Source of the DNA: Marsupella aquatica
Lineage: Eukaryota > Plantae > Marchantiophyta
DNA length: 64,000 bases
Direction: 5' to 3'
Assembly (NCBI GenBank): GCA_973895155.1
Contig: OZ316899.1
Coordinates: 3,617,455-3,681,454 of the forward strand
Shown here in pieces: positions 7,699 to 24,875 of this stretch. Each line of letters starts with the position of its first letter. Position 1 is the stretch's first letter. A model generated the notes under the pieces. That model saw only the letters and a program-made list of their open reading frames with translations, was not told where the DNA came from and searched no databases. The position numbers and the translations under genes were made by a program.

Positions 7699-8988
7699 TT
7701 GAAAGAGTGTTCTAGAAATTCCAGTTCCAAGTTTTGGAAACTTCATTTAAGGTTGTTGGATAATGTATTTATTGAATTTGGAAATTTTACCAAGCCACTT
7801 TGGAAAAAAGAATTTCCAGACTTAGTGAAATTACTGATGTCGGAGGAGCCTGGTGTTTTAATTGATAAGGATGTTGCATTTGCTCCCAAGTTTGATTTAG
7901 TCAAAGCAAAGCAGTGGATAGAATCTTTGTCCAAGGCGAGAAAGCTTCCAGCGGTGAATACAAACCCTGTGCCCGAGCAAGCGCCAGAGAAAGCTCCAGA
8001 ACCTACAACAGAGACCGCGGGAACTACAGCAGCAACCTCTCAAAGAGCAGTGGGAAAACAAAAACAAAGCCAAAGGAAACCTCCGGTTGAGAAGAAACTT
8101 CCAGTTGAGAAGCCGGTTGAGAAGCCGAGTACAAGAAGCCAAGTTGAGAAGCCAGTTGAGAAGCCAGTTGAGAAGCCAAGTATGAGAAGCCGAGTTGAGA
8201 AGCCAGTTGAGAAGAAACTTCCGGTTGAGAAGCCAAGTGCAAGTGAAAAGAGACCAAGACAGAAGAAGAAACAGAAAATTGACAGTGCCATCATGGATGA
8301 CACTACAGAAAACCTGACAATGCATTCACAAGATGTGGATGAGCAATTGGACGCTCCTGAGGAGAAGAAGGTCTTAGAAGGTAATGAGGTACTACAACAA
8401 ATGGAGCAATATTATATGTTTGGGATCAATTCGATATTTTCTATTCCCGTAGAGAGTATTTTCCCTGCGTTGGCAAGACTCTGTTACAGAATGTTGAATG
8501 CAGACCATGTAAAGGAGGTGGCCAATTCCATGATAAGAAATCTGGGGCATGAACCACACATAGCAGACTTGATTCCTTACACTGCAAAACATAGAAACCT
8601 AATGCAGTATGACAACATGGAATCAGATAGGAGGGACTTTGTAGCAACCGTGAAAAAGGGCGAGGTTCAATTCCTTGCCATTAGCGGTCAACATTCGGCC
8701 AGAGCAACCAGATGGATTCAAGAATGCGCAAACAAGGATGCCAAGCTAACAACATTGGTGAAAAAGCTGGAATTTTGAAAGTCAAGAATATTATCTCCTC
8801 GAACACCATCGTCAATATTAGTTGAGCATTCAATGCGATCTAATGCTATCAATAGCACGATGGTGTTTCAGTCCTGCTTCAAAGATACAGTCGTTCATGC
8901 CAGGCGACAATTTGTGGAATGTGGAAGACCTAGCCGGCCAAAACATGGGGACAACAAAACAAACGCTCAAGACAATCAAAAGTTTCAA
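7699..8988 (+). pseudogene. Cassette 2, 5' part: N-terminal region, VEKP repeats and ParB/sulfiredoxin-like N-terminal domain; TGA at 8776-8778
   Basis: Reads FSIPVESIFPALARLCYRMLNADHVKEVANSMIRN...QFLAISGQHSARA, resembling ParB-N (ipi..I.p...R.......eLa.SI...G...P....iidG.rR..A). The frame continues past the stop (KSRILSPRTPSSILVEHSMRSNAIN...) to a candidate phase-0 donor at 8989. Confidence 0.6.
8083..8235 (+). repeat. Coding minisatellite, 12-bp core GTTGAGAAGCC(A/G) encoding VEKP repeats
   Basis: Visible tandem copies; the protein reads PPVEKKLPVEKPVEKPSTRSQVEKPVEKPVEKP... Confidence 0.85.
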
Positions 8989-11802: not shown

Positions 11803-12943
11803 GAGCTTGGTGCTGACATGATTATTGATGAATATGGATCTCTTATTTCAGAATGAAATTCAGCTTTTGACTTTCTATTTATTCATACCAATCTAAAATA
11901 CTTCTCGGTCTCACAGAATGTGCTCACCAATTAAAGTCTCCATATCCGTCTACACATTGTGAGGCTTCTAAAAATGGTATGTAGGTTAATTTTCTTTTTT
12001 GTCAGCCATTGTCTTGTATTTTTGGACTGAGACAATCCTAATCCAAAGTTCACTTTGGTCTTTTCTCTGAGAATGGTGTTTGGTGCACTTGCAGAATCAA
12101 GACCTGGTCCCGTCAACACTACTACACTATCGGCCCCTTTTGCGAACCCATACACATCACAATCAACAAAGGCCCGATAAACAGAATTCCGGCACTTGCG
12201 AACTAACACGCATCGCTACACCATCCCAAATTGCGAAGTTAAAACCTTCGCACGCGGACCATCGCAACGCCATCGCAACACCATGGCAACTTCCCAACCG
12301 AATTCCCTCGCAACTTGCCGAACACTTGCGAGTTCAAAATTGTTGCAGACGCTTTGCATTATGCCGCACGGTCCTTTGTTACCGACGTTGATTTTTGTGA
12401 AGCTGGAAGGTTCGCTACATGTTTGTGATGGGAATGCGTTCGGTATTTGCGATGTCATGGTGTTGGCAACTAGCAAGCCTTATAAGATCACTCTTATGCA
12501 AAATAAATTTGATGGGGACTTTTGAAACAAATTGGATCGGAACTTGTGATATAGTTTAGGCCAGAAGTTGTGAAGCGTTTGCATTCGCAACTTGTGATGT
12601 TACTTGGTTCTATAATAGCGATCCGAGTCATTTCAGTCTTTCCTAGTTATCCAAGTTCGCAATGGGTTTGCACTTTCATGGGAACATGACTTTCAATCAA
12701 TGTTTTGCGAGGGATTTCTCTTGGCAGTGGACCCAATGTGGAAGGCAAATGTTTTTTATAAGATGGCAAGTATATAGGTGGATATACCAAAATGTTAGGG
12801 CTTGAAGGAACCCAATACACAAGAGGGGTGGCATATCTGATGCCAAGTCACCCTACTCAACATATGCTATCCTAGCTAAGCTCCAGCACGGCTAGTCAGT
12901 GACATATATCTCATGAGCCCGGTCATGAGATTCTACAAGCTAA

Positions 12944-15002
12944 CTAAAATGGACTCTTCCGACCCCGCTTTGTCGGCTTCTTTGCCGGCTTCTTGCCCTT
13001 ATCCTTCCGTGGATGTACAGCCTGGTGCTGACGGGTGTGCGGTGCCTTTCAGCACTGCTGCTCCTACTGCTCCTCCTGCTCCTCCTGCTCCTGCCCATCC
13101 TCCTCCTCATCACCTCCCTCCTGCTCCCCCTCATCATCAACCTGTCTCGATGATGCACGACTACTACCACTACCGCGATGGGATGAACCTACCTCCCAGC
13201 TACTGCCCCCCTCCCTAGAACCACTGGTAAGAGGAGTAGCCCCCTCATCCTCATCATCACTACTACTTGCGTCAGCACCCGACCCCTCAGGCTCATCCAA
13301 ATCATGCATCCGTACACTTAATCAGTTTCTACAAATTAAAAAGGGTCATCCACAATGTTGGCATCACAATTAATTAAACCTTGAACACCTAGATACTTAC
13401 AGTAGCCAACTCGGCATCCACCATCTGAAAGAGGTACTTTCTCCCATGCTCCATCCCTATCTCAATATGTTTCTTGGATATCTTCCTCTTATATTTCCGG
13501 TACTACCATCCACCATAAAACCAAAAATTAAACCCATAGGCTAAACCAAAATTCACAATGCGAGAGGCCTTAGGCCTACAAAAGTTAAACTACTTTGAAA
13601 ACAACTCAAATTCACATTTGCAAAGCTGATGCGTTCACAAAATGCAAAGCCCTAATTTTTGCAAAGGCATTGCGATGGCTTTTGCGATGCAAGTACCTTC
13701 GCAACAGCATCAGAAAATCCAAAAAGAAAAAAGTGCATAATAGATTTTGCGAGGCTCTTGCAAACGGATACGCATTGCAATGGGATCGCAAACTATGATC
13801 CCAAGAGGTTTTTAAAAATGCACAAATTTCCAAGTGTCAATCGTGACCTAAAACAGTGCACAAGCAAGCACATGAGAGCATGGACATTCATGACATTCTG
13901 TTCACTTGCATTACCTCAACTGAGAAAGTAAGGAGGAAAGAGCTTAGGGAGGAGAGGAGACACTCACAAAGTGGGCCTTGAGACCGCGGAGCCCGCCTTG
14001 ACCCAGCTTGTGGACTGGATTGGGGGTGGCTTTCACTCGCTTGGCTGCATCCATGAAATGTTTGGGTGGTCTTCCTTCTTCGTCGACCACCTTTTGCACA
14101 TCAGCTACCTTCTGCTTGAGTCCCTTCAGGTCATGGTCAAGGGGGAGCTTCCCGGTCTCCTTTGCTTTCAGGGATCGAGCTAGTGTATCCTTCCACTGTT
14201 CCAACTCGTGAGTTGCTTTGATTTGCACCTCAATCTTGTAAAATGCATTCCAGATGTCCTCAGTGAATTGGAGGGGCCTGCGCAAACTCCTGTACAATCT
14301 CAAGTCTCTCAGGTGGGCTCTAATCTTCATCCTATCATGGTATCTCATTTGAGACATGGAATTAGAAATCTTGTCTGCCAGCCATTGCTCATCTATGTCA
14401 GCTCCATTACGAAATGCATCCTTGATCTGATTCATCACTCTCTTTCCCTCTGCCTTCTCAACCTTTCCCCATTGCATGCCTTGTGAGAAATTGCTTGTGA
14501 TGATCTGTTTGATGGTGCTCTTAGCCCCTGCATAGGCTAGCTCAGTTGGAGTCCCAGTTGTCTCCAAGGCAATGAATGGAAGATTTTTCCTTGCATCCTC
14601 TTTCTGACGTTGCTCATCTCATTGTTTTCGAATTGCATCCCTCTCCTCTCTTCTCTTCTGTTTTTCTATGGCTTGAGGAGAGGCAACTCCCGACTTAGCC
14701 CTCTCCTCCCTCTTCCTTCTTTTCTCTCTAGCCTTCTCCTCAGCTGCGACCCTCTCTTCCTCGTCTCTAGTAGCTTGCCCTGCCACAATTCCTGTTTGTA
14801 AAACCTGGCCTAAAATGGCACTCAAGGAGGCAAGCCTTGCTGGAGTATTCAAATTTACTTCACCCAACTGTGCAGCACTGAGATGTTGGGCTACTAAGTC
14901 GCTCCATGCATTCTGTTGCTTCTCCTGATTTGCCCCATTGCCACTACCACCAGCACCATGTCCTCCACTCCCACCGTGCTCTCCACTCCCACCGGTAGCC
15001 AT
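12944..15002 (-). pseudogene. TnpA-like (Ptta/En/Spm-type) accessory gene of the nested CACTA, spliced, with stops
   Basis: ORFs 14619-15002 and 13944-14567 are one frame across a TGA. It reads ...RRPLQFTEDIWNAF...PVHKLGQGGLRGLKAHF, followed by a GTGAGT donor. Later small exons end in an acidic/basic tail with TAG at 12944. It shares the H-x-G-x-G-G motif with the outer TnpA (KEHFGRGG). Confidence 0.65.
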
Positions 15003-15354
15003 AGCTCAATCCCTCTCAGGTCTCTCTCGATATTCTCCCCGCGGCCCCTTCTCCTCTCGCTCTCCCGATCAAACAAGGAATGAGCTCGACCCGAGCTCCT
15101 GCCGACACATACGTATTTAAAAAAAAGCTCCTTGCGATCACATTCGCATCACAAACTGCCACCCTATTACCTTCGCAAACTGTCTCGCAACTTGCGATAC
15201 TTTTGTGAAGAACATACCCTCGCTAATCCATCGCAACCCGCAGAAACGCCCAAACATTGCTCTCGGCCTCTGTATTTGCAAAGATGTTGCGAACCCGGGA
15301 GGTTCGCAAAATGTATCTCTAATTTGTGAAGCAATTTGCAAGGCAGGTGATCTC

Positions 15355-16125
15355 GGTTTAGGGTGGGAAACTATCCCAGGTGTTTAAACGGCTCTACAAG
15401 GGTATAACCTAAACCCTTTTAACTCAACATGGATTTGTGAATGGCCAATTACTTTGAAGAAGAGGATTTTAGGTTGTAGTTGGGCTTTGTGTTTTTGTTT
15501 TTGAATCTTAATTGGGTTCTAATTTAACAAAGGGTTTGAGTTTTAATTTGGGGTTTGGATTTAGAAAGGGTTTAGTTTAGGGAGGGTTGTGTTTCAATTG
15601 AAGGGGTTAATTTGGGTTTAGGTTTTAATGTAAGGGTTGGGTTTGACTTTTCACTGATTTCATATTTTTTGCTCTATACATATTTCAGTTTAGGGACATG
15701 GTTTTAATAGAGGGCTTTAGGTTAGGGTCTAAGGTAGGGGTTTGGGTAAGGTTGTAATTGAGAAGTTTGGGTTAGGGTTTAGGGTAGGGGCTTGATTTTG
15801 GTTTAAGTTTAGGGGTTTGGGTTAGGTTTTAGCTGAGGGGTTTGGGTTAGGTATTGAATATAGGGGATCGATGGGTTCAATTATAATTCAGGGTTGTGTT
15901 TAATTTTTAATTTAGATATTTGGGTTAGGATTTAGGGTAAAGGCTTCATAGGTAATGAGGGAGTTTGGGTTATGGTTTCAGATGGGGTTAGAGTTAGGTT
16001 TTAGCTGAGGGATTTGGGTTAGGGTTTGAATGTAGCAGTTGGGTTTTTAGCGTAGGGGTTTTGGCTAGGGTTTAGGGTTTAGGGTTTGGGTAAGGGTTTT
16101 ATATGTTCATGTTTAGGGTAGGTTT
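15355..16125 (+). repeat. Degenerate telomere-like (TTTAGGG/TTAGGG-like) G-rich tract
   Basis: Dense GGGTTT/TTAGGG variants, with a perfect run TAGGGTTTAGGGTTTAGGGTTT near 16066-16087. Confidence 0.8.
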
Positions 16126-16563
16126 TTTTTTCTAATTGAGGTTATGCTTTCTTTATTTCATTAACATGAAGGGGTGGAACACTCTAGGAGTTGCAGGGCA
16201 CTTCCCCATTGTTTTGAAAGTTTTGGGTAATGCATATGCATTGCGAGAGCTCGGGCATCTGAAAGGTAAAGCTTGTTTTCCTGGCATTTTGTATTTTTAC
16301 TGTAACTTGAGGGTCTATCACCCCTTTCTATAGTTTACCATAAGTCATTGCTTAATTCATTGTATATTTGCAGATTTTTCCCTCCTACTTCCAGATTGGG
16401 TTCATCAAGTTTGGACCAAAAGACCTATAGGCATTGTTGAGCCCGGGTCTCATAAAGGTATTTTTTCCTTTCATTTTAGTTTAATATGTCTACGTAGGGA
16501 TTACAAATGATCGTTTTAGCTATTTTTTTACTAACTTGCTATTCCAAATCTTCCACTTGCCAG

Positions 16564-17715
16564 ATGTCTTCATCCTCTACAACTTCCACCACATCAGACT
16601 CCTCCTCTGATGAGGACATAGATCCTCCTCCTCAGCCTGAAACAGCCGCTCGTCGACCTAGTGGTCCACCACACCAACTTTGCAATTGTAAAAAATGTGT
16701 GGGGATGGTTGTCCAAAAGTCATATGTATGTGCAGACCATATTTCTTGATATGGACAACATCGAGGTCTTACACCCAGAGCCTCTTCATCCCATACGGTG
16801 AGTTGTAAACTTACTATGGTTTATTTTTTATTCAATAAATATTGCTAGCGTGATAAGTTGGGGAAGTTCACAATCACTTTGTTAGATTTGTTCCTATAGG
16901 TATCTAATAGGCCTACACCCACGGCACCAACACCCTATGTTCCTTCACAAGGAGTTCTAGATGCTATAGGCTTGGCCCTTTCACAAGCTTTTCGTTTAGT
17001 TGCAGCAGAGCGAAGTGGTGTTGGGACAGTTCAGGATGATGGTATTGTTACATGAGGGAAAAAATGGTCTAAAAGGCAACCTAGAGGGGAAGTTGATCAG
17101 TACACCTGTAGGGTTGATGGTAGGTGGGGACCTTGTACATTCACAAGGAAATGTGTTCCTATCATAAAGGATTGGAATCCTGATTGCCTTGGTTTTCCAT
17201 GTGATATAACCTATGGTGAGGAAATAGAGGTTTGGGGAAGACATTGGATTGTCAAAAGTTCTACACTAGGGGCGAGACATGGGTATGGAATTTTTTCTTG
17301 CCAGGACATCATTGTGGATGATATGGGTGGAAAAGGGCGCTCTCAAGATGGACCAACGTTGTTCCCATATGGTGGACCCATTTACAAGCGGAGACATTGG
17401 AACATGCTCCTTGTACAACACCTTGAGTGGAAGACTTGTGCATTGGACATGGATACTTTTGATGGTTGCACTAGGAAGTATAGTGAACAACGTATAATTG
17501 ATGGTGATCCCATCCATAGTGGAAATATAGCCGGTTTCCTTAACAGTACTGTGGGGACCCGGCCTAAGCGTAGGAAAAACTGTGAATGGGTTTTTGTTGA
17601 TGGTCCCCCTCCAACACCATATGGGCAGAGATATCATCATGGCCATTGTCTAGTTGTAGCTACTAGGACCATCAAGGCCGGAGAGGAGTTGTTTACACAT
17701 TATGAGTGGGATTAG
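16564..17715 (+). pseudogene. Transposase-associated Zn-binding exon (16564-16797) spliced to a SET-domain exon (16900-17715); two TGA stops
   Basis: Exon 1 reads CNCKKC...CADHIS*YG (transposase-associated C/H motif). Exon 2 reads VKSSTLGARHGYGIFSCQDI...GNIAGFLNS...NCEW...VVATRTIKAGEELFTHY, i.e. SET motifs GxG, (R)FxNH-like and GEELxxxY. GTGAGT donor at 16798; TAG acceptor ends at 16899; phase 0 and in frame. Confidence 0.8.
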
Positions 17716-17911
17716 GCTTATTTTAGGGATATGTATTATTTATATGTTCCTTCATGCTTTGTGAACATATATTTTGTAAGTTAGGGTTTACACCCTAAAC
17801 CTATGATGTTCTTTCACATTGTATGTTAATAACATGTGTCGATATTGTTTTTGTTTTATGAGGGATTTAATTTGGAGTTTGATTGTGAATGCTTTATTGT
17901 ATTGTCCATAG

Positions 17912-20900
17912 AATGTGCGACCTAGTCAAGATATGTTGCCAAGGAGGTTGAGAGCTACATATGAAGAAATGGGCATGCCACAAGACGGAGTCACATCATC
18001 AACAAATTCTTCATCCAATGACAGTGACAATGAGGGTTTGCATGAAGGGGCACCTAGGACAGATTTTGAGGTCATGTAGGACCAGGAGACAACCATGGAT
18101 GACTTCATGACAGATTGGTTTGGTGTGGATGTTGATGGTGAAGGACGTGGACCACCCAATGAAGGAGCTCCTCCACCAAATGCTGCACGTGACCCCCAAC
18201 CTCAACATACACCAGAAGGTCAATAACAATGGGAAGAAGCAGAGGCACATGCTAGAACACCTATTTATGGGGGTGCTCGTTTGAATAGACTCTCTGCCAT
18301 CTTGGCATTGATGAATCTTCAGGCAAAACACAAGGCAAGCAATGCCCTTCTATCGGATTTGTTTGCAATTTTCCATGACCTCATGTTACCCAGTGACAAT
18401 GTATCGCCAGGAACTTGGAAGGAGGCAAAGAGAGTTCTATCATTCATTAGTATGGAATATCATATCATTCATGCTTGTGTGAATGACTGCATCCTATATC
18501 ATGAGACCAATGCCAACATAACTAAGTGTCCAATTTGTCATGAGCCTCGATATGACAACAACATGTTGACGGAAAAGGTGCCCAGGAAAACTGTCCGTTG
18601 GTTTCCCATTATTCCTCGATTGTTGCATATGTATCGATGTTCTGACTTGGCAGAATTGATGGTATGGCATAAGACACATCGATCAGAGGCTGGTGTCATG
18701 CGGTTGCCAGTTGACTCCCCTGCTCATAAGCATGTGGAGGCACAATGGTCAGAGTTTGCACATGACCCTCGTCATGTGAGGTTGGGGTTGGCATCAGATG
18801 GGGTTAGCCCCCACTCCCTTGGTGGGAAAGGACGCCCAACATCAGTTTGGCCGGTGGTTGTTATGAATTACAATCTTCCACCATGGTTGTCCATGAAAAA
18901 GGGCTTCTTATTGTTATCATTGATTATCCCATGTCCATCTAAGGTAAAAAACATGGACACCTATTTGACACTATTGGTTGGGGAACTCCAAAAATTATGG
19001 GACGATGTGTGGGCCTATGATGCTCGGAAAACTACAAGGGGATTACCACGTGTCTTCAAATTGAAGGGAATTAATATGTGGACCATGCATGACTATCCTG
19101 GTAAGGGGATATAGCAACGTAGACAGGAAACAGGTAAACAAGAATTTTTTTTCCTGTTTTTAATATGTTGTTACCAGGAAAAAATCACTGTTACCAGGAA
19201 AAATGACAATTTAAAAATGTCTCATAAAACATGTTATTTCCAAAAAAAATTAACAATGCAACATTTTTGGCTAGCTTTGGGCGCTACTATTAGCAGCGCC
19301 GGGCGCTCGCAAAAAAACTGGTCGACCAAAAAAAATAAATTCAAAAAATAAATTCAAAAAAATTCCATTTTCCTGTTACCAGTTTCTGTTATTAAATCCT
19401 GTTTCTTGTTTGCTGTCTTTTGTAAACACCTCCAATAAGGGGTATGGATTGGTGTTTTTTTATGTATTAGAGAGTTTGTTTTAAAAGAAGTCCCTCATAT
19501 TTATGAATGTACATGAACTTTTTAAATCCTTTGACTCTAATTGAGAAAGTTGTTTTGGTTTGGCTTTGTTGCAGGGTTTGGATTTGTTTCAGGGTTACAA
19601 ACTCAAGGGTATAAGGCATGCTCCACTTGTGGTCCAAGCCTTGAAGATATGGCCAAGTACTCAAGATGGCTTCGCAAGATAATCTACCTTGGGCATACCA
19701 AGTTTCTTCCACTTGGACATGAGATGAGGTCTGACCCCCTTCTATTTTAAGACTTTGACATGATCAATGGTGATGAGCGTGACATACCTAAGCGTACATC
19801 CTTTGCACATTGGAAATCCATAGTTGATAGGGTGGCAGACCCTAACGACCCCATGACATTTGATGGAAGTGGGTTGACGAGGTGGAGTATACTAGCCACA
19901 TTGCCGTATTGGCCAGAGTTGAAGATTCATCATTTGTTAGACCCCATGCATATAGAGGGAAACGTTGGGAAGGCTTTGATCAAGCATTTTTATGGAGAAA
20001 AGGACCATAATTTTAGGGAGGCATGCCAGGATCTAGAACGACATCCAGATGTATGCATAACAATTGATGCATCAACAGGGATGGAACACCGTCCTTCAGC
20101 TCCTTGGGTTTTGAGTGTTGGTGAAAGAAGAGAGTTTCGACAACGCATAGGTCAGATGCGGTTTCCTACAGGCTATGGTGCCAATCTCCGGAAAGCTTTT
20201 GGGATGGAGGACAGTCATAAGTGGCCAATGTATCTAAAGACACATGACTATCACCGTTTACTACAACATATACTTCCTGTGGCAATCATAGGCTTGGGCA
20301 GTGAAGAAGTGCAAGACGCCCTATGGTCATTGGAAATATATGAAGAAGAGATCCCACGGATGGAGTATTGGCAGCAGAGGTAGTGTGCAAGTTAGAGAAG
20401 GCCCTCTCTCCTTCCTTCTTTGATTGTCAAGTGCATTTACTTATTCATCTTGTGAGGGAGGTTGCCATTGCTGGTCCAGTGCATTGTCGTTGGATGTATT
20501 GGTTGGAAAGGTATATGGCTGTGTTAAAGGCTTATGTACGGAATCGTGCACGAGTGGAGGGGAGCATGGCAATAGGATACTTGGCAGCTGAGAGTATGTT
20601 CTATTGCAGCAACATCTTAGCTACCATTGATCCTAGTTGTCCACGCAGTTGGATGGAAGAGAAAGAAATGGAGGAGGATCGTTTAACAGGAGCCAAAAAA
20701 ACACGCTTATTCGAGTACTGACCGGAGTGGAGTTGACACAGATGACTACTTTCATGTTGAGTAATAGTACTGTGATGGAAGAATGGAGAGAGTTTTATGA
20801 GGATGCAAAGAGGGAGAGTCATCGCCCAAGGATTTTTCCAAAGTTCCTTGAGTATATGAGGGAGAAAGTACTTTAGTTGGATGCTATGGTGGCCCAAGGT

Positions 20901-21500
20901 GAGAGTGTATCACATTTTCCAGATATGACTCTTGAGGTTCAAACAATTGTTCATGGCCCTTTGAGACTTGTTCAGACCAGAACAACAATGTGGACACAAG
21001 GGAGACATTTCAGGATTTCTGACCTTGATGAGAAGAGGGGTAGAACTTTGACTGTGGAGTTCAAGGGCAGTTCATGCAGGATTCACAAAGTAGCCGCCAT
21101 GACACCAATGTCATCCAAGATGTGGTGCCTCACTATGGGAAGATAGAGGAGATCTTGATTGTATCCTATGATGTGGATACAAAATTTGAAGAGTATGTCT
21201 TCAAGTGTAAGTGGTTCAAAATTCACTTGGTTGGTGAGAATCGCACGGTACTTCTTGATGATTGTGGGTTTACTCGACTGAAGACATCAGCAACTAGCTT
21301 TCAACCATCTCATTGGCAAACATCTAAACCGTTTATATTCCCAAGTCACCTTGAGTAGTGTTTCTATATTCCGTACCCACCAGACCCAGAGGAGTGGTCG
21401 GTTGTTATATCGTATGTGCCACAATCTCATTCCATTATCTGAGAAAAACCTGAAGTTATTATTGTGTCAAACGGAGGAGAGGATGAGGACCAAGTTTGAT
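17912..21500 (+). pseudogene. TnpD-like CACTA transposase (Transposase_21, DUF4218, DUF4216 regions), disrupted
   Basis: Reads IHACVNDCILY...CPICHEPRY, RWFPIIPRL, PRHVRLGLASDG, WPVVVMNYNLPPW, MHDYPG|FGFVSGLQTQGYKACSTC (intron 19101-19574), LDPMHIEGNV, LKTHDYH, FFDCQVHLLIHL, RWMYWLER and YGKIEEI...FKCKWF. Confidence 0.95.
19107..19432. mobile_element. MITE-like element, copy 2, in the transposase intron
   Basis: Near-identical to 4387-4738. The flanks TGGTAAGG and CAATAAGG form a decayed 8-bp TSD with 5 of 8 bases matching. Confidence 0.85.
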
Positions 21501-22253
21501 GCATCACTAGTAGTAAAACTTGTTGTGAGCGTATAATTGTGATTATATTAACTATCATGGTTTTATTTATATTTACCTATTTATTTTCTTCTTTTGTCTT
21601 ACAAACACTTGGACTTTGAAATTTCATTTTACTGCTATATAAGCAACCCTAGCCACTAGAAAAGTTATCCTCATGCATGCCACCTTTTTGAAATCCCTAG
21701 CTTATAACCTAAACACATGCATTCTCCATCTTCTAAAGTATTATCTCAAAAATTTCCATTCTGAAAACTTTGCAAACAACTCTCTTTGCGAAACATTTTT
21801 TGAACCAGTCGGGAATGAATTTATGAACCTCTTGTGAATCCAATTCCATTGGTACTTGTGATACAAATACGTTCTCAAACTTGTGACCAAATTGGCTTTG
21901 GTACTTTGCAACCCAACGTTTTTCACAACACTTTCCAAACATAATAGGTTCACCAACCACTTGTGATCGTATTAGTATCGCTAAATTATGAACCAAAATG
22001 TATCTGAATACGGTCGCGATGGTTGCGGACTCACAAAATCGTTACGAGACAACTAGTATCTAAATGTGTTGCGAAGTCAATAACATCAAAAATTAATTGC
22101 GATGTATGTAGCTTTGCAACGTGAATTTGCGACGATAAGAGCATGGGATATTGTGATGCCTGTTGCATCACAAAATATCTGAAGGTTCTAACATCGCAAG
22201 GCCTTCCCGATGTCAAAAAACACCTTCGCAAAAGGGGCCGATCTGTAGTAGTG

Positions 22254-23270
22254 CAAGCGGAAGTTGCTGATTTTGGACCTTAATAAAATACTTTGGGATT
22301 TTGTTGAATTCCAAAGCAAGGGCACATCCAAGGATATTGTCACCTCAAGTGGAGTGCATTGGGATAGAAAAATGGTATTAGTCGCATGTATACAAAATGA
22401 CCAGGGCTCCATGAGTTTCTTAAGTTGGTTTTTGACAGATTTGACGTTGCAATTTGGACATGTGCTGGGATACCGCAAACAATGAAAATGTTGAACATGA
22501 TGTTCATTGATGAGGAGAGGTCAAAACTCCAGTTCGTATTCACACAGGTGGAAGCTTTTGACACAGGCATTCAAAGGGGTGACATTACAAACGGAAAGGC
22601 AAATGTGCTACTGAAGGATTTTTGGGTGGTATGGAATGCATTTGGAAATCTATATGATGAAACCAACACCCTCCTTGTGGATGACTCCCCCCTTAAGGCC
22701 TTTGCCAACCCAGACATGACCGGATTATTTCCAGTGCCCTACACGCATGCCAATCGTGGAGATAATTTTCTTCTAGCAATTCTTTGGCCATGTCTTGAGA
22801 AACTTTCACATGCAAGTGATATTCGATGTTATCTTCTTCTGAACTCTCCAAAGTGGTCTCTTTTGCACATGAAGAGAGACAAGGCAAAAAATGAGATTAC
22901 TTATGATCAACTTAGCAAGAAATTTGCAGCAAAAATTTGGAAGTCACACTTTACGCATAGTGTGTTGGACCTCAACAACAATGAGATCCCTTGGAATGTA
23001 AAGCACCGTATATGTAGTTTACGTCCTGAGGAGGAACTTGACAATGCACTTGTGAACTCACTTGCTAAATCATTTTTAGGAAATGACTATTCAGGTCCAT
23101 ATAGAGAAAATCCCAGACACTTTTTGCGGGAGATTATAGCCATTAGAAACAACACCACCAAATTTCAACTCCCTGAAAATAAAGGGCATTGCAACCGTGA
23201 CAATAGGGTAGATAGGAAAGGAGACAGGGGCACATGCTCAAATACACATTGTACAAAGCACTTGGTTTAG
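22254..23270 (+). pseudogene. FCP1/NIF-like HAD phosphatase domain, copy 2 (exon begins at 12095, split by the nested CACTA), with C-terminal Cys/His motif
   Basis: Reads KLLILDLNKIL, (R)PGLHEFL...FDVAIWTCAG, NTLLVDDSPLKAFANP, CNRDNRVDRKGDRGTCSNTHCTKH. It is collinear with copy 1 and has a frameshift near 22395. Confidence 0.85.
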
Positions 23271-23647: not shown

Positions 23648-24875
23648 TTGAAGGGTTATGTTCGAAACAAGGCACGTCCAGAGGCTTCTATGGCTGAAGG
23701 CTACCTTCTAGATGAATCTTTAGGATTCCTTTCTGAATACATGATCGATGTTAAGGGGACAGGAATGAGAACATGGGACTTGGAGGAGAATCCTGGTGTT
23801 GCAGGCATTGTCTTGGAAGGAGCTGGAAAGCAGATCACCTTGGAGTGGAATGATATGATAGCTATGCATCATTACATACTGGAGAATGAAGAGCTGGTGG
23901 AACCATGGTATAGGTATGAACATGGTTTATATTGTTAAGTTCTTTGTTGTTTATTATTAAACATAATTGAGTTTTGAGCAAAAATTGTGTGGGCCTAGGA
24001 GCTGACTGTCATTCTTGCCATGCAGGGTTTATGATGATCAAAAGGAGGCAATTACCAAGCACAGAGCAGATTTCCGGAAAGAATGGATGAAGAATCCAGG
24101 AAATCGGAGGAATCCTGTGCCATATCCCTATGATTTGGATGAGTTGCCTCCTTTTAGAGAATGGTTTGAAGTGACAATTAGAAGACATAATTTTGAGAAT
24201 GAGTTTGAACGAATGGTGTTGGCAGCGTATAGTGTACCACCTAGTCTAAAGGCACTGTGGTACAGGGCCTGCAGAGCCTGCAGAGCCTATGGGCACCATT
24301 GGAGGACCATTCCATCACTAGGTTCCTTGATTGATTGTGACTCATTTGGGTTCAAGACTTTTGATTCTGGGATGGCTTGTACATTCACTGAGAAGCGGGT
24401 CATTAGGTCAGGGGCAACAGTAGATGAATCTGTACAATATGTGGGGGTGTTGATAGACATCTTAGTGTTGAACTATGGGCCTCTGATAAAGGAAGTGGTC
24501 ATTTTCAAAGGAAGGTGGGCAAACCCATCTTGGACTCCCAAAGCCACTGCAAGTATGAGATATGATGTGTCTGGATTGTGGCAAGTAAATTTTCAGAAGG
24601 AGCTGGGTGCTTCCAAGAAAATGGACTATGTATTGCCACGACAGATAGAACAAGTGTTTTTTTACCCAAATGATAAGGGGATTGCATGGAGGACAATCCT
24701 CCACAAGGAATCCAGGTCTACAAGGGTGCTAGGTGATTACATGGAAGTTGATTTCCATGATACTATGGATGACAATGCTAAGTTTCACATAGAGTTGGCA
24801 AAAGCCTGTACAACTAGACAGGAGCCCGGACCAAGTACTACAGACAAAGGAAAAAGAAAGTATAAAAGGAAATGA
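23648..24875 (+). pseudogene. 3' remnant of the outer element's TnpD-like transposase (end of DUF4218 + DUF4216)
   Basis: Reads LKGYVRNKARPEASMAEGYLLDESLGFLSEY, YVGVLIDILVLNYG...VIFKGRW and YVLPRQIEQVFFYP. No upstream Transposase_21 domain is seen for this copy. Confidence 0.85.

Follow-up and report, generated by a model that had tools for sequence, protein, structure and literature searches.

A SET-domain exon in the transposase unit of a CACTA element from Marsupella aquatica, probably sharing the first exon of the transposase

The DNA considered here is a stretch of 64,000 nucleotides (the "window" in what follows) from Marsupella aquatica (Marchantiophyta), taken from the forward strand of contig OZ316899.1, positions 3,617,455 to 3,681,454, of GenBank assembly GCA_973895155.1; all positions below are counted from its first letter. 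The window holds a complete CACTA transposon of the En/Spm, TNP2-type class, a decayed copy of 10,137 bp that occupies positions 12117-22253 on the plus strand. The region that encodes the transposase of this element also includes, ahead of the transposase exons proper, an exon whose product is predicted to have the fold of SET domains, i.e., of the protein and histone lysine methyltransferases. Transposons that bring along chromatin- or DNA-modifying enzymes of their own are, to our knowledge, rare, and such transposons show how mobile DNA fights or manages silencing by its host. With both of its ends and its target-site duplication in place, the window copy is a complete and well-delimited reference copy for this arrangement, though a dead one.

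Exons of the transposase unit in the window

All of the exons to be described are read on the plus strand, and a slash marks the exon borders. The first coding exon (exon 1, 16564-16797) opens with an ATG at 16564 and encodes a head rich in serine and aspartate, which is followed by LCNCKKCVG...H, a sequence of the form C-x-C-x2-C-x-G...H-I...G. It ends after 16797 at a phase-0 donor, ACG/GTGAGT. An intron of 102 nt with GT...AG borders (16798-16899) separates it from the SET-domain exon (16900-17715), which is entered in phase from the acceptor ...CCTATAG/GTA and comprises 271 codons and a stop; the natural stop at 17713-17715 is conserved, and the exon 1-SET junction is the one seen in two annotated proteins, P0001 and P0007, to which we return below. 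Beyond the SET stop lies an AT-rich and poorly conserved spacer (17716-17911). For the transposase it would form the end of the first coding intron, and for the SET isoform it presumably acts as 3' untranslated region (UTR) and poly(A) region. In an alignment of the relatives (alignment A1) conservation drops after the SET stop and resumes exactly at the ATAG acceptor of the transposase exon, and other copies vary by insertions and deletions ("indels") within the spacer (read joints at 17718-17897). A GTAAGT donor near 17777, which would make a separate intron of the spacer, was considered and rejected, as it is not conserved in the related loci L001 (Calypogeia fissa) or L002 (Sphagnum jensenii).

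The transposase is encoded by two exons. Transposase exon A (17912-19100) is entered from the acceptor ...CCATAG/AAT in the frame of the open reading frame (ORF) at 18281; it encodes an acidic N-terminal linker and the first part of the Transposase_21 domain (PF02992, matched at 18281-19111 with E=3.5e-37) and ends at a phase-1 GTAAGG donor. Transposase exon B (19575-21536, the 3' limit being approximate), whose acceptor TTGCAG/GG restores the sequence DYPG-FGFVSGLQTQGYKAC, encodes the rest of Transposase_21, then DUF4218 (PF13960, E=5.8e-31) and DUF4216 (PF13952, a weak match with E=0.022). Several frameshifts interrupt exon B: the intact 679-residue ORF of the related locus L007, which matches all three of these families, gives four tblastn alignments to it, collinear with one another but in shifted frames. 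The exons, and the pieces flanking a stop, were searched one by one rather than as part of a joined, spliced model.

Upstream of exon 1 there are probably one or two further exons, spliced and belonging to the 5' UTR, because the ATG of exon 1 immediately follows an acceptor-like CCAG (L007 has GCAG just ahead of its ATG) and donor-like sites occur in the region before it (16136-16563), namely AAAG/GTAAAG near 16267 and AAAG/GTATTT near 16459. The cysteine and histidine motif of exon 1 was compared with the Transposase-associated domain of Pfam by two routes. A direct hmmscan search against PF13963 gave E=0.14 and 12.8 bits (cut-off 27.7), with profile positions 36-57 alone being matched. When instead a profile of exon 1 from seven lineages was aligned by hhalign to the N-termini of TNP2 proteins, the match reached 87% probability with E=3.8e-6 over 28 columns (81% probability with a shallower exon-1 profile). 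The aligned part is the C-x-C-x2-C...H-x3-G core of the domain, the flanking parts of which are absent, and exon 1 can thus be regarded as a putative cut-down Transposase-associated domain with a candidate zinc-binding motif.

The window copy is a pseudogene and is mutationally dead. It contains four in-frame stops, TGA at 16747 (exon 1), TGA at 17053 (SET exon), and TAG at 18077 with TAA at 18224 (both in transposase exon A), and neither protein can therefore be made from it. Three of the four (16747, 18077 and 18224) stand, as far as homologues can be aligned, where relatives have arginine or glutamine-type codons, one C-to-T change away, and at 18077 all of the other copies recovered from sequencing runs have C; a pattern of this kind would fit the decay of a methylated, silenced element.

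An original prediction, made from the letters of the window alone, had described exon 1 at 16564-16797 with its CxCxxC...H motif and phase-0 GTGAGT donor, together with acceptors at 16900 and 17912 that are both in phase with it, the latter in the frame of the ORF at 18281, and every one of these features was found as described. The prediction had also called the motif "transposase-associated", for which the Pfam match is weak and the profile-profile match better. It placed the end of the SET exon at 17715, where the conserved stop indeed lies, but this is not the first in-frame stop of the window copy, since the TGA at 17053 precedes it. Its proposal that one promoter yields either the transposase or a SET protein agrees with the layout and the phases; it fails for this particular copy, the four stops of which had been overlooked.

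The SET exon: relatives, selection and fold

A word-based protein search with the SET piece returned 38 proteins of 46-77% identity from the liverwort Calypogeia fissa, five species of the moss genus Sphagnum and metagenome contigs, some of the clusters holding hundreds of members. A search with a family profile, which was limited by a length window and by the need for shared 5-residue words, added many proteins of another liverwort, Riccia sorocarpa; its 102 hits placed the relatives in bryophytes and metagenome or assembly contigs alone and included no ordinary host SET gene. The family is also numerous, for sequencing reads over 16000-21900 fall into thousands of short contigs of 88-99% likeness with a huge summed depth, as expected of a high-copy family.

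The original prediction had been staked on other copies of the family carrying the SET exon, and they do: the succession of exon 1, SET exon and transposase is found in eight further loci (nine with the window), in mosses and liverworts alike. The loci with this layout include two Calypogeia fissa lineages whose transposases are about 50% identical (L001 and L009), Sphagnum jensenii (L002), Riccia sorocarpa (L011, in which the SET exon has an internal deletion) and further assemblies (L006, L003-L005, L007-L008 and L010). Across them the motif exon is followed by a short intron, then by the SET exon (about 245-315 codons plus stop), a spacer of 144-222 nt and the transposase. Use of an acceptor of the 16900 type, on which the prediction also depended, is seen in gene models, those of Calypogeia and Sphagnum included: the annotated proteins P0001 (351 residues) and P0007 (343 residues) consist of exon 1 and the SET exon joined through a 16797>16900-type junction, and the same exact junction is present in P0014, P0025, P0148 and P0168.

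The SET exon of the window and the Calypogeia protein P0001 share 73% identity, and between lineages SET identity falls to about 40%. The ratio of nonsynonymous to synonymous divergence (dN/dS) was calculated by the Nei-Gojobori method on codon alignments. For the SET exon most pairs have values of 0.15-0.26, and the closest pair 0.44, with synonymous divergence (dS) near 1 or saturated; for the transposase exon the ratios are 0.10-0.15. When the window, Calypogeia and Sphagnum copies are compared with one another, the intron and the spacer can barely be aligned while both exons align well. Because of these low ratios, and because the exons align where the intervening DNA barely does, the SET exon is under purifying selection and has been a working part of this CACTA family for a long time.

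Two further observations were made on these relatives. Synonymous divergence between the Sphagnum and Calypogeia copies is about 1.0-1.4 (L001, L002 and the window, SET and transposase exons), which may reflect either slow rates in bryophytes or horizontal transfer of the element. In L011 (at 8459-8812) an internal deletion has removed the N-terminal half of the SET domain, and a public model of this locus, P0230, bridges the deletion by connecting sequence of exon 1 and of the linker with the transposase exon; the annotation of decayed copies can therefore mimic alternative splicing.

As for the domain itself, the Pfam SET family (PF00856) is matched at 17056-17712 with E=1e-6 and 29.5 bits, above the cut-off of 22.4, and a precomputed PF00856 hit is present on many of the database homologues. 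Three SET motifs are invariant or nearly so in the family, G-x-G (as HGYGVF), N-x-E-W and G-[DE]-E-L-x3-Y(-x-W), and other columns are conserved in LFPY-G-x2-Y and IDGDP-R-x-GN-x-G-x-INS, the positions of all of these having been taken from alignments and not from superposition on a solved complex. In the alignments they read as the motifs customary for the cofactor and the catalytic tyrosine, with two exceptions, the histidine and the C-terminal end. The family also has peculiarities. The histidine of the canonical NHS is absent, the corresponding sequence being F/Y-I-N-S ("INS"); a basic insertion of 8-12 residues follows the INS; there is a conserved beta-rich N-terminal extension (V-x-GRWG...); and the protein stops 3-8 residues after the Y-x-W, without a post-SET segment.

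Searches of the sequences in the PDB, by phmmer and with the family profile, gave nothing significant for the SET exon. An AlphaFold model of P0001 (residues 130-351) based on 62 sequences has a mean predicted local distance difference test score (pLDDT) of 86.1 and a predicted template modelling score (pTM) of 0.80; with 17 sequences as input the pLDDT had been just 49.6, and that model was set aside. Foldseek comparison of the model with the PDB gave 281 chains at E<=0.001, the best 50 of which are all SET enzymes, among them SET8, LegAS4, MLL1, ATXR5, EZH2 and NSD1, and the leading matches have a probability of 1.00, E-values of 1e-7 to 1e-5, 15-22% identity and template modelling (TM) scores, normalized by target, of 0.45-0.65. 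Comparison with viral models and the ESM Atlas again gave SET matches, cellular, bacterial and viral ones at equally low identity. By this modelling the product of the SET exon is a SET-fold protein, and from its sequence it is likely to have enzymatic activity. The SET call of the original prediction has thus held up, both in the Pfam hidden Markov model (HMM) search that it had proposed and in the fold, whereas the placement of the domain among plant, bacterial and viral SET families, which it had also proposed, led to no closest subfamily: among the structural matches in the PDB, the viral models and the ESM Atlas no SET subfamily stands out, and a feature-based Atlas match to a giant-virus SET cluster is to be taken as a lead only.

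The first exon and the proposed splice choice

The question raised by this arrangement is whether exon 1 belongs to the SET protein, to the transposase, or to both. The exon-1 donor is in phase 0 in all seven loci tested for it, and in each of seven loci tested for the acceptor an in-phase AG behind a pyrimidine tract stands ahead of the transposase exon. Five of these latter loci have, in the TAG of the acceptor, a stop in frame with the transposase, which bars any extension of the frame further upstream. In the sub-lineage of the window, conserved coding sequence (N-[VAI]-R-P-S-[QE]-[DK]-M-LPRRLR, with synonymous changes in its arginine and serine codons) begins right at the acceptor, and more distant lineages start there with DEFVEPNPHVRPRRM, NQFVESDFGVLPRAM or FVSPNPLVLRGRA. 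The first in-frame methionine of the transposase exon is found 1, 7, 14, 24 or >45 codons downstream and is not conserved, and the SET exon is likewise without a conserved methionine. With no conserved methionine in either downstream exon, an upstream start is needed for both, and exon 1 is the sole conserved candidate. Canonical TNP2 proteins consist of a Transposase-associated domain, an acidic linker and then Transposase_21, and since exon 1 aligns to the core of the first of these, its junction with the transposase exons would restore the standard TNP2 layout. Taken together, these features make it probable that the first coding intron of the transposase contains the SET exon and that exon 1 is common to both products.

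CACTA elements are known to make several proteins by alternative splicing, maize En/Spm giving TnpA and TnpD from one transcript, and an arrangement of the same general kind may be envisaged here. In intact members of the family, the main transcription unit would open with a short coding exon carrying the putative zinc-binding motif, the phase-0 donor of which could splice to one or the other of two acceptors. The nearer one would open the exon of about 270 codons for a SET-fold lysine methyltransferase, ending at its own stop, and would give a "Zn-motif-SET" protein of about 340-350 residues. The far acceptor, 144-222 nt past the SET stop, would give a protein of TNP2 layout, with the associated-domain head, the acidic linker, Transposase_21, DUF4218 and DUF4216. 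The enzyme and the transposase would then have a promoter and a start codon in common, much as with TnpA and TnpD of En/Spm.

Several observations weigh against this account. Four sequencing runs that contain the family, DNA-like in character and none of them recorded as RNA, show neither the 16797>16900 nor the 16797>17912 joint. The joints that these reads do contain have non-GT..AG ends and lie in introns and spacers alone; they are for these reasons copy-to-copy indels and not products of splicing, and are neutral on the question. No database protein found by a word search with the Calypogeia transposase exon or by exhaustive profile searches with exon 1 joins exon 1 cleanly to the transposase, the proteins recovered being calls of single ORFs, models of exon 1 with the SET exon, and chimeras made by gene predictors. 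This negative result is in part a matter of the tools, since the word search is confined to a window of lengths and the gene callers used on metagenomes leave introns unspliced. The methionine of MLPRRLRA, 7 codons past the acceptor, is conserved in the sub-lineage of the window and could be an independent start. Among intact relatives the PF00856 scores are near the cut-off of 22.4 bits (22.9 for P0007 and 21.7 for P0001), and catalytic activity is not assured, because INS replaces NHS and no post-SET segment follows the tyrosine. To these must be added that the window copy itself is dead.

Some of the same observations could be accommodated by two genes in tandem, one made of exon 1 and the SET exon with a poly(A) site of its own, the other a transposase gene transcribed from a promoter in the spacer (about 200 bp) and begun at its own methionine. 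We think this arrangement unlikely, yet it has arguments in its favor: the methionine 7 codons past the acceptor is conserved in the window, L001, L002 and L006, the transposase gene calls in the databases begin at or near that MLPRRLRA methionine, the Calypogeia and Riccia annotations give the transposase as a separate gene, and no joint corresponding to the long splice occurs in the sequencing runs. Against this, the methionine is missing from the homologous position in L003, L007, L009 and L010, where the first one comes 14 to >45 codons further on, past conserved residues; conservation resumes at the AG after the pyrimidine tract and not at the methionine; and most of the calls with a methionine start come from gene callers that do not splice. 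A transposase begun in this way would, moreover, be without the Transposase-associated head of canonical TNP2, the motif of which exon 1 supplies.

The converse possibility, a fusion of SET domain and transposase of the kind known from SETMAR, with the SET exon as an internal cassette whose stop would be bypassed by a donor near its end, seems to us very improbable. Two database proteins have this form, P0166 of Riccia sorocarpa, in which the SET sequence is joined to the transposase just before the SET stop, and P0147 of Sphagnum jensenii, in which the join falls within the SET domain. Both, like P0230, look like artefacts of gene prediction because they cut through domains or sit on a deleted copy. 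The SET frame is closed by a stop in every locus examined, 3-8 residues after the Y-x-W, no conserved donor precedes that stop in the window, L001 or L002, and the TAG of the transposase acceptor closes the frame a second time in five of seven loci tested. Least credible of all is the reading of the SET exon as a passenger, i.e., a captured fragment of a host gene without function, of the "Pack-type". Plant DNA transposons often carry fragments of host genes, and the window copy is broken; but the position, phase, length and SET motifs of the exon have been kept across lineages that are only about 40% identical in SET, its dN/dS in most pairs is near that of the transposase, and ordinary host SET genes, as noted above, are absent from the profile hits.

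If exon 1 is shared as we propose, the family probably makes a chromatin-type enzyme of its own from the promoter and the first exon of its transposase, judging by the conserved layout. Beyond this, we infer the splice choice itself, catalysis, and an action, be it on chromatin or on some protein of the host or of the transposon, from which the element would benefit. That the benefit consists in a modulation of silencing is a guess, and it is speculation that the element directs the SET protein to its own chromatin. In bryophytes, methylation of H3K9 and of H3K27 both mark transposons. One scheme, which we put forward as a doubtful one, is that the Zn-motif-SET protein acts as a self-targeted chromatin writer: the head that it has in common with the transposase would bind the same partner or the subterminal repeats of the element, and the lysine-methyl mark would shield the element from silencing or time its transposition. 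Should both the splice choice and the activity be real, the family would offer a compact natural case of a co-regulated transposase and epigenetic-type enzyme, as well as a testable route to finding which lysine mark helps a DNA transposon of bryophytes.

The whole element and its place among known systems

The ends of the element were traced outward from a perfect 18-nt inverted repeat (12129-12146 and 22225-22242). The left terminal inverted repeat (12117-12146, plus strand) starts CACTACTACACTATCGGCCCCTTTTGCGAA and the right one (22224-22253, minus strand) reads TTCGCAAAAGGGGCCGATCTGTAGTAGTG, the reverse complement of which is CACTACTACAGATCGGCCCCTTTTGCGAA; apart from a small indel, CACTACTACACTATCGGCCCCTTTTGCGAA and TTCGCAAAAGGGGCCGATCTGTAGTAGTG are mutual reverse complements, and the inverted ends measure about 30 bp. 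They are flanked by a 3-bp target-site duplication, CAA, read directly in the sequence at 12114-12116 on the left and 22254-22256 on the right, such a 3-bp duplication being a hallmark of CACTA elements. The element thus has the CACTA inverted ends, the 3-bp duplication and a transposase with Transposase_21, DUF4218 and DUF4216. Short subterminal repeats of the TTGCGA/CGCAA type extend on the left to about 13700, and an 11-bp unit, ACCATCGCAAC, is present there in three copies at 12258-12290; on the right, TTGCGA-type repeats begin near 22020.

Besides the transposase unit, the element contains what is probably its second gene, divergent from that unit, which consists of two ORFs of 207 and 127 residues (13944-15002, minus strand). 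It matches no Pfam family above threshold, and by tblastn it is 51% identical (E=9e-10) to an ORF in the equivalent position of the Sphagnum locus L002 (9092-9451, minus strand). It occupies the position expected for TnpA/TNP1 and is unrelated in sequence to these. The interval from this gene to the transposase unit contains degenerate telomere-like repeats of the TTTAGGG type in units of 25 and 50 bp (15700-16120), which come immediately before the putative 5' UTR exons. Outside the element, 170 bp beyond its right end, an ORF of 281 residues (22425-23270, plus strand) encodes a phosphatase domain like that of NLI-interacting factor (FCP1/SCP-type HAD; PF03031, E=2.7e-6). Further on, at 23648-24875 (plus strand), a second TNP2-type transposase fragment comprises the end of DUF4218 (E=6.7e-8) followed by a 286-residue ORF without a family hit, and is a remnant of another CACTA copy.

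Among the closest systems known is maize En/Spm, with which the bryophyte element has in common the CACTA ends, the 3-bp duplication, the subterminal repeats, the TNP2/TnpD-type transposase and, as we infer here, the derivation of two proteins from one unit by a choice of splice sites, with one coding block lying within an intron of the other. In En/Spm, however, the second product is the DNA-binding protein TnpA, whereas here it would be an enzyme of the SET fold whose N-terminal coding exon is also that of the transposase, and the bryophyte element has in addition the gene on the opposite strand (13944-15002).

SET genes as such have been described on other transposons, namely on HarbingerS and on MuDR elements of Phytophthora, according to the passages of PMC12730594 that cite Kojima and Jurka 2014, and also on Helitrons and on the red-algal Plavaka, a member of the CACTA/EnSpm superfamily, whose PAG2 combines a DNA methylase with a SET domain (bioRxiv 10.1101/2025.02.11.637652). 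The common theme is a DNA transposon with an accessory SET-domain gene. In all of these, to go by their descriptions rather than by sequence comparison, the SET genes are separate accessory genes, and PAG2 differs further in having a DNA-methylase domain, whereas in the bryophyte family, a TNP2-type CACTA group with moss and liverwort hosts, the SET exon is placed within the gene of the transposase, from which it seems to take exon 1. In the literature available to us in full text, which does not extend to Repbase Reports and most subscription journals, we found no paper on a SET exon in a TNP2-type CACTA element of bryophytes or on one nested in the first coding intron of a transposase.

Three other comparisons help to place the family. 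In SETMAR of primates, too, a SET domain and a transposase (that of the mariner Hsmar1) are brought into one transcription unit through splicing, but there a host gene has captured the transposase as an exon and makes a single fusion protein, whereas here it is the transposon that holds the SET exon, with a conserved stop, and the products would be alternative and unfused. The VANC proteins of the VANDAL (Mutator) elements of Arabidopsis, as presented in the passages that treat them in PMC12730594 and bioRxiv 10.1101/2025.02.11.637652, are likewise accessory proteins encoded by an element and thought to alter its epigenetic state; unlike a SET protein, VANC is not an enzyme of known fold, and it acts through sequence-specific binding and a loss of DNA methylation. 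The stand-alone SET proteins, e.g., SET8/SETD8, ATXR5, LegAS4 and those of giant viruses, provide the best structural matches and have G-x-G, N-x-E and EL-x3-Y in common with the family, from which they differ by their low identity of 15-22% and by the INS, the basic insertion, the N-terminal extension and the missing post-SET segment that characterize the latter. SET genes on transposons are thus already known, and what the bryophyte family adds to them is a new form, a SET exon nested, as it appears, in the gene of the transposase.

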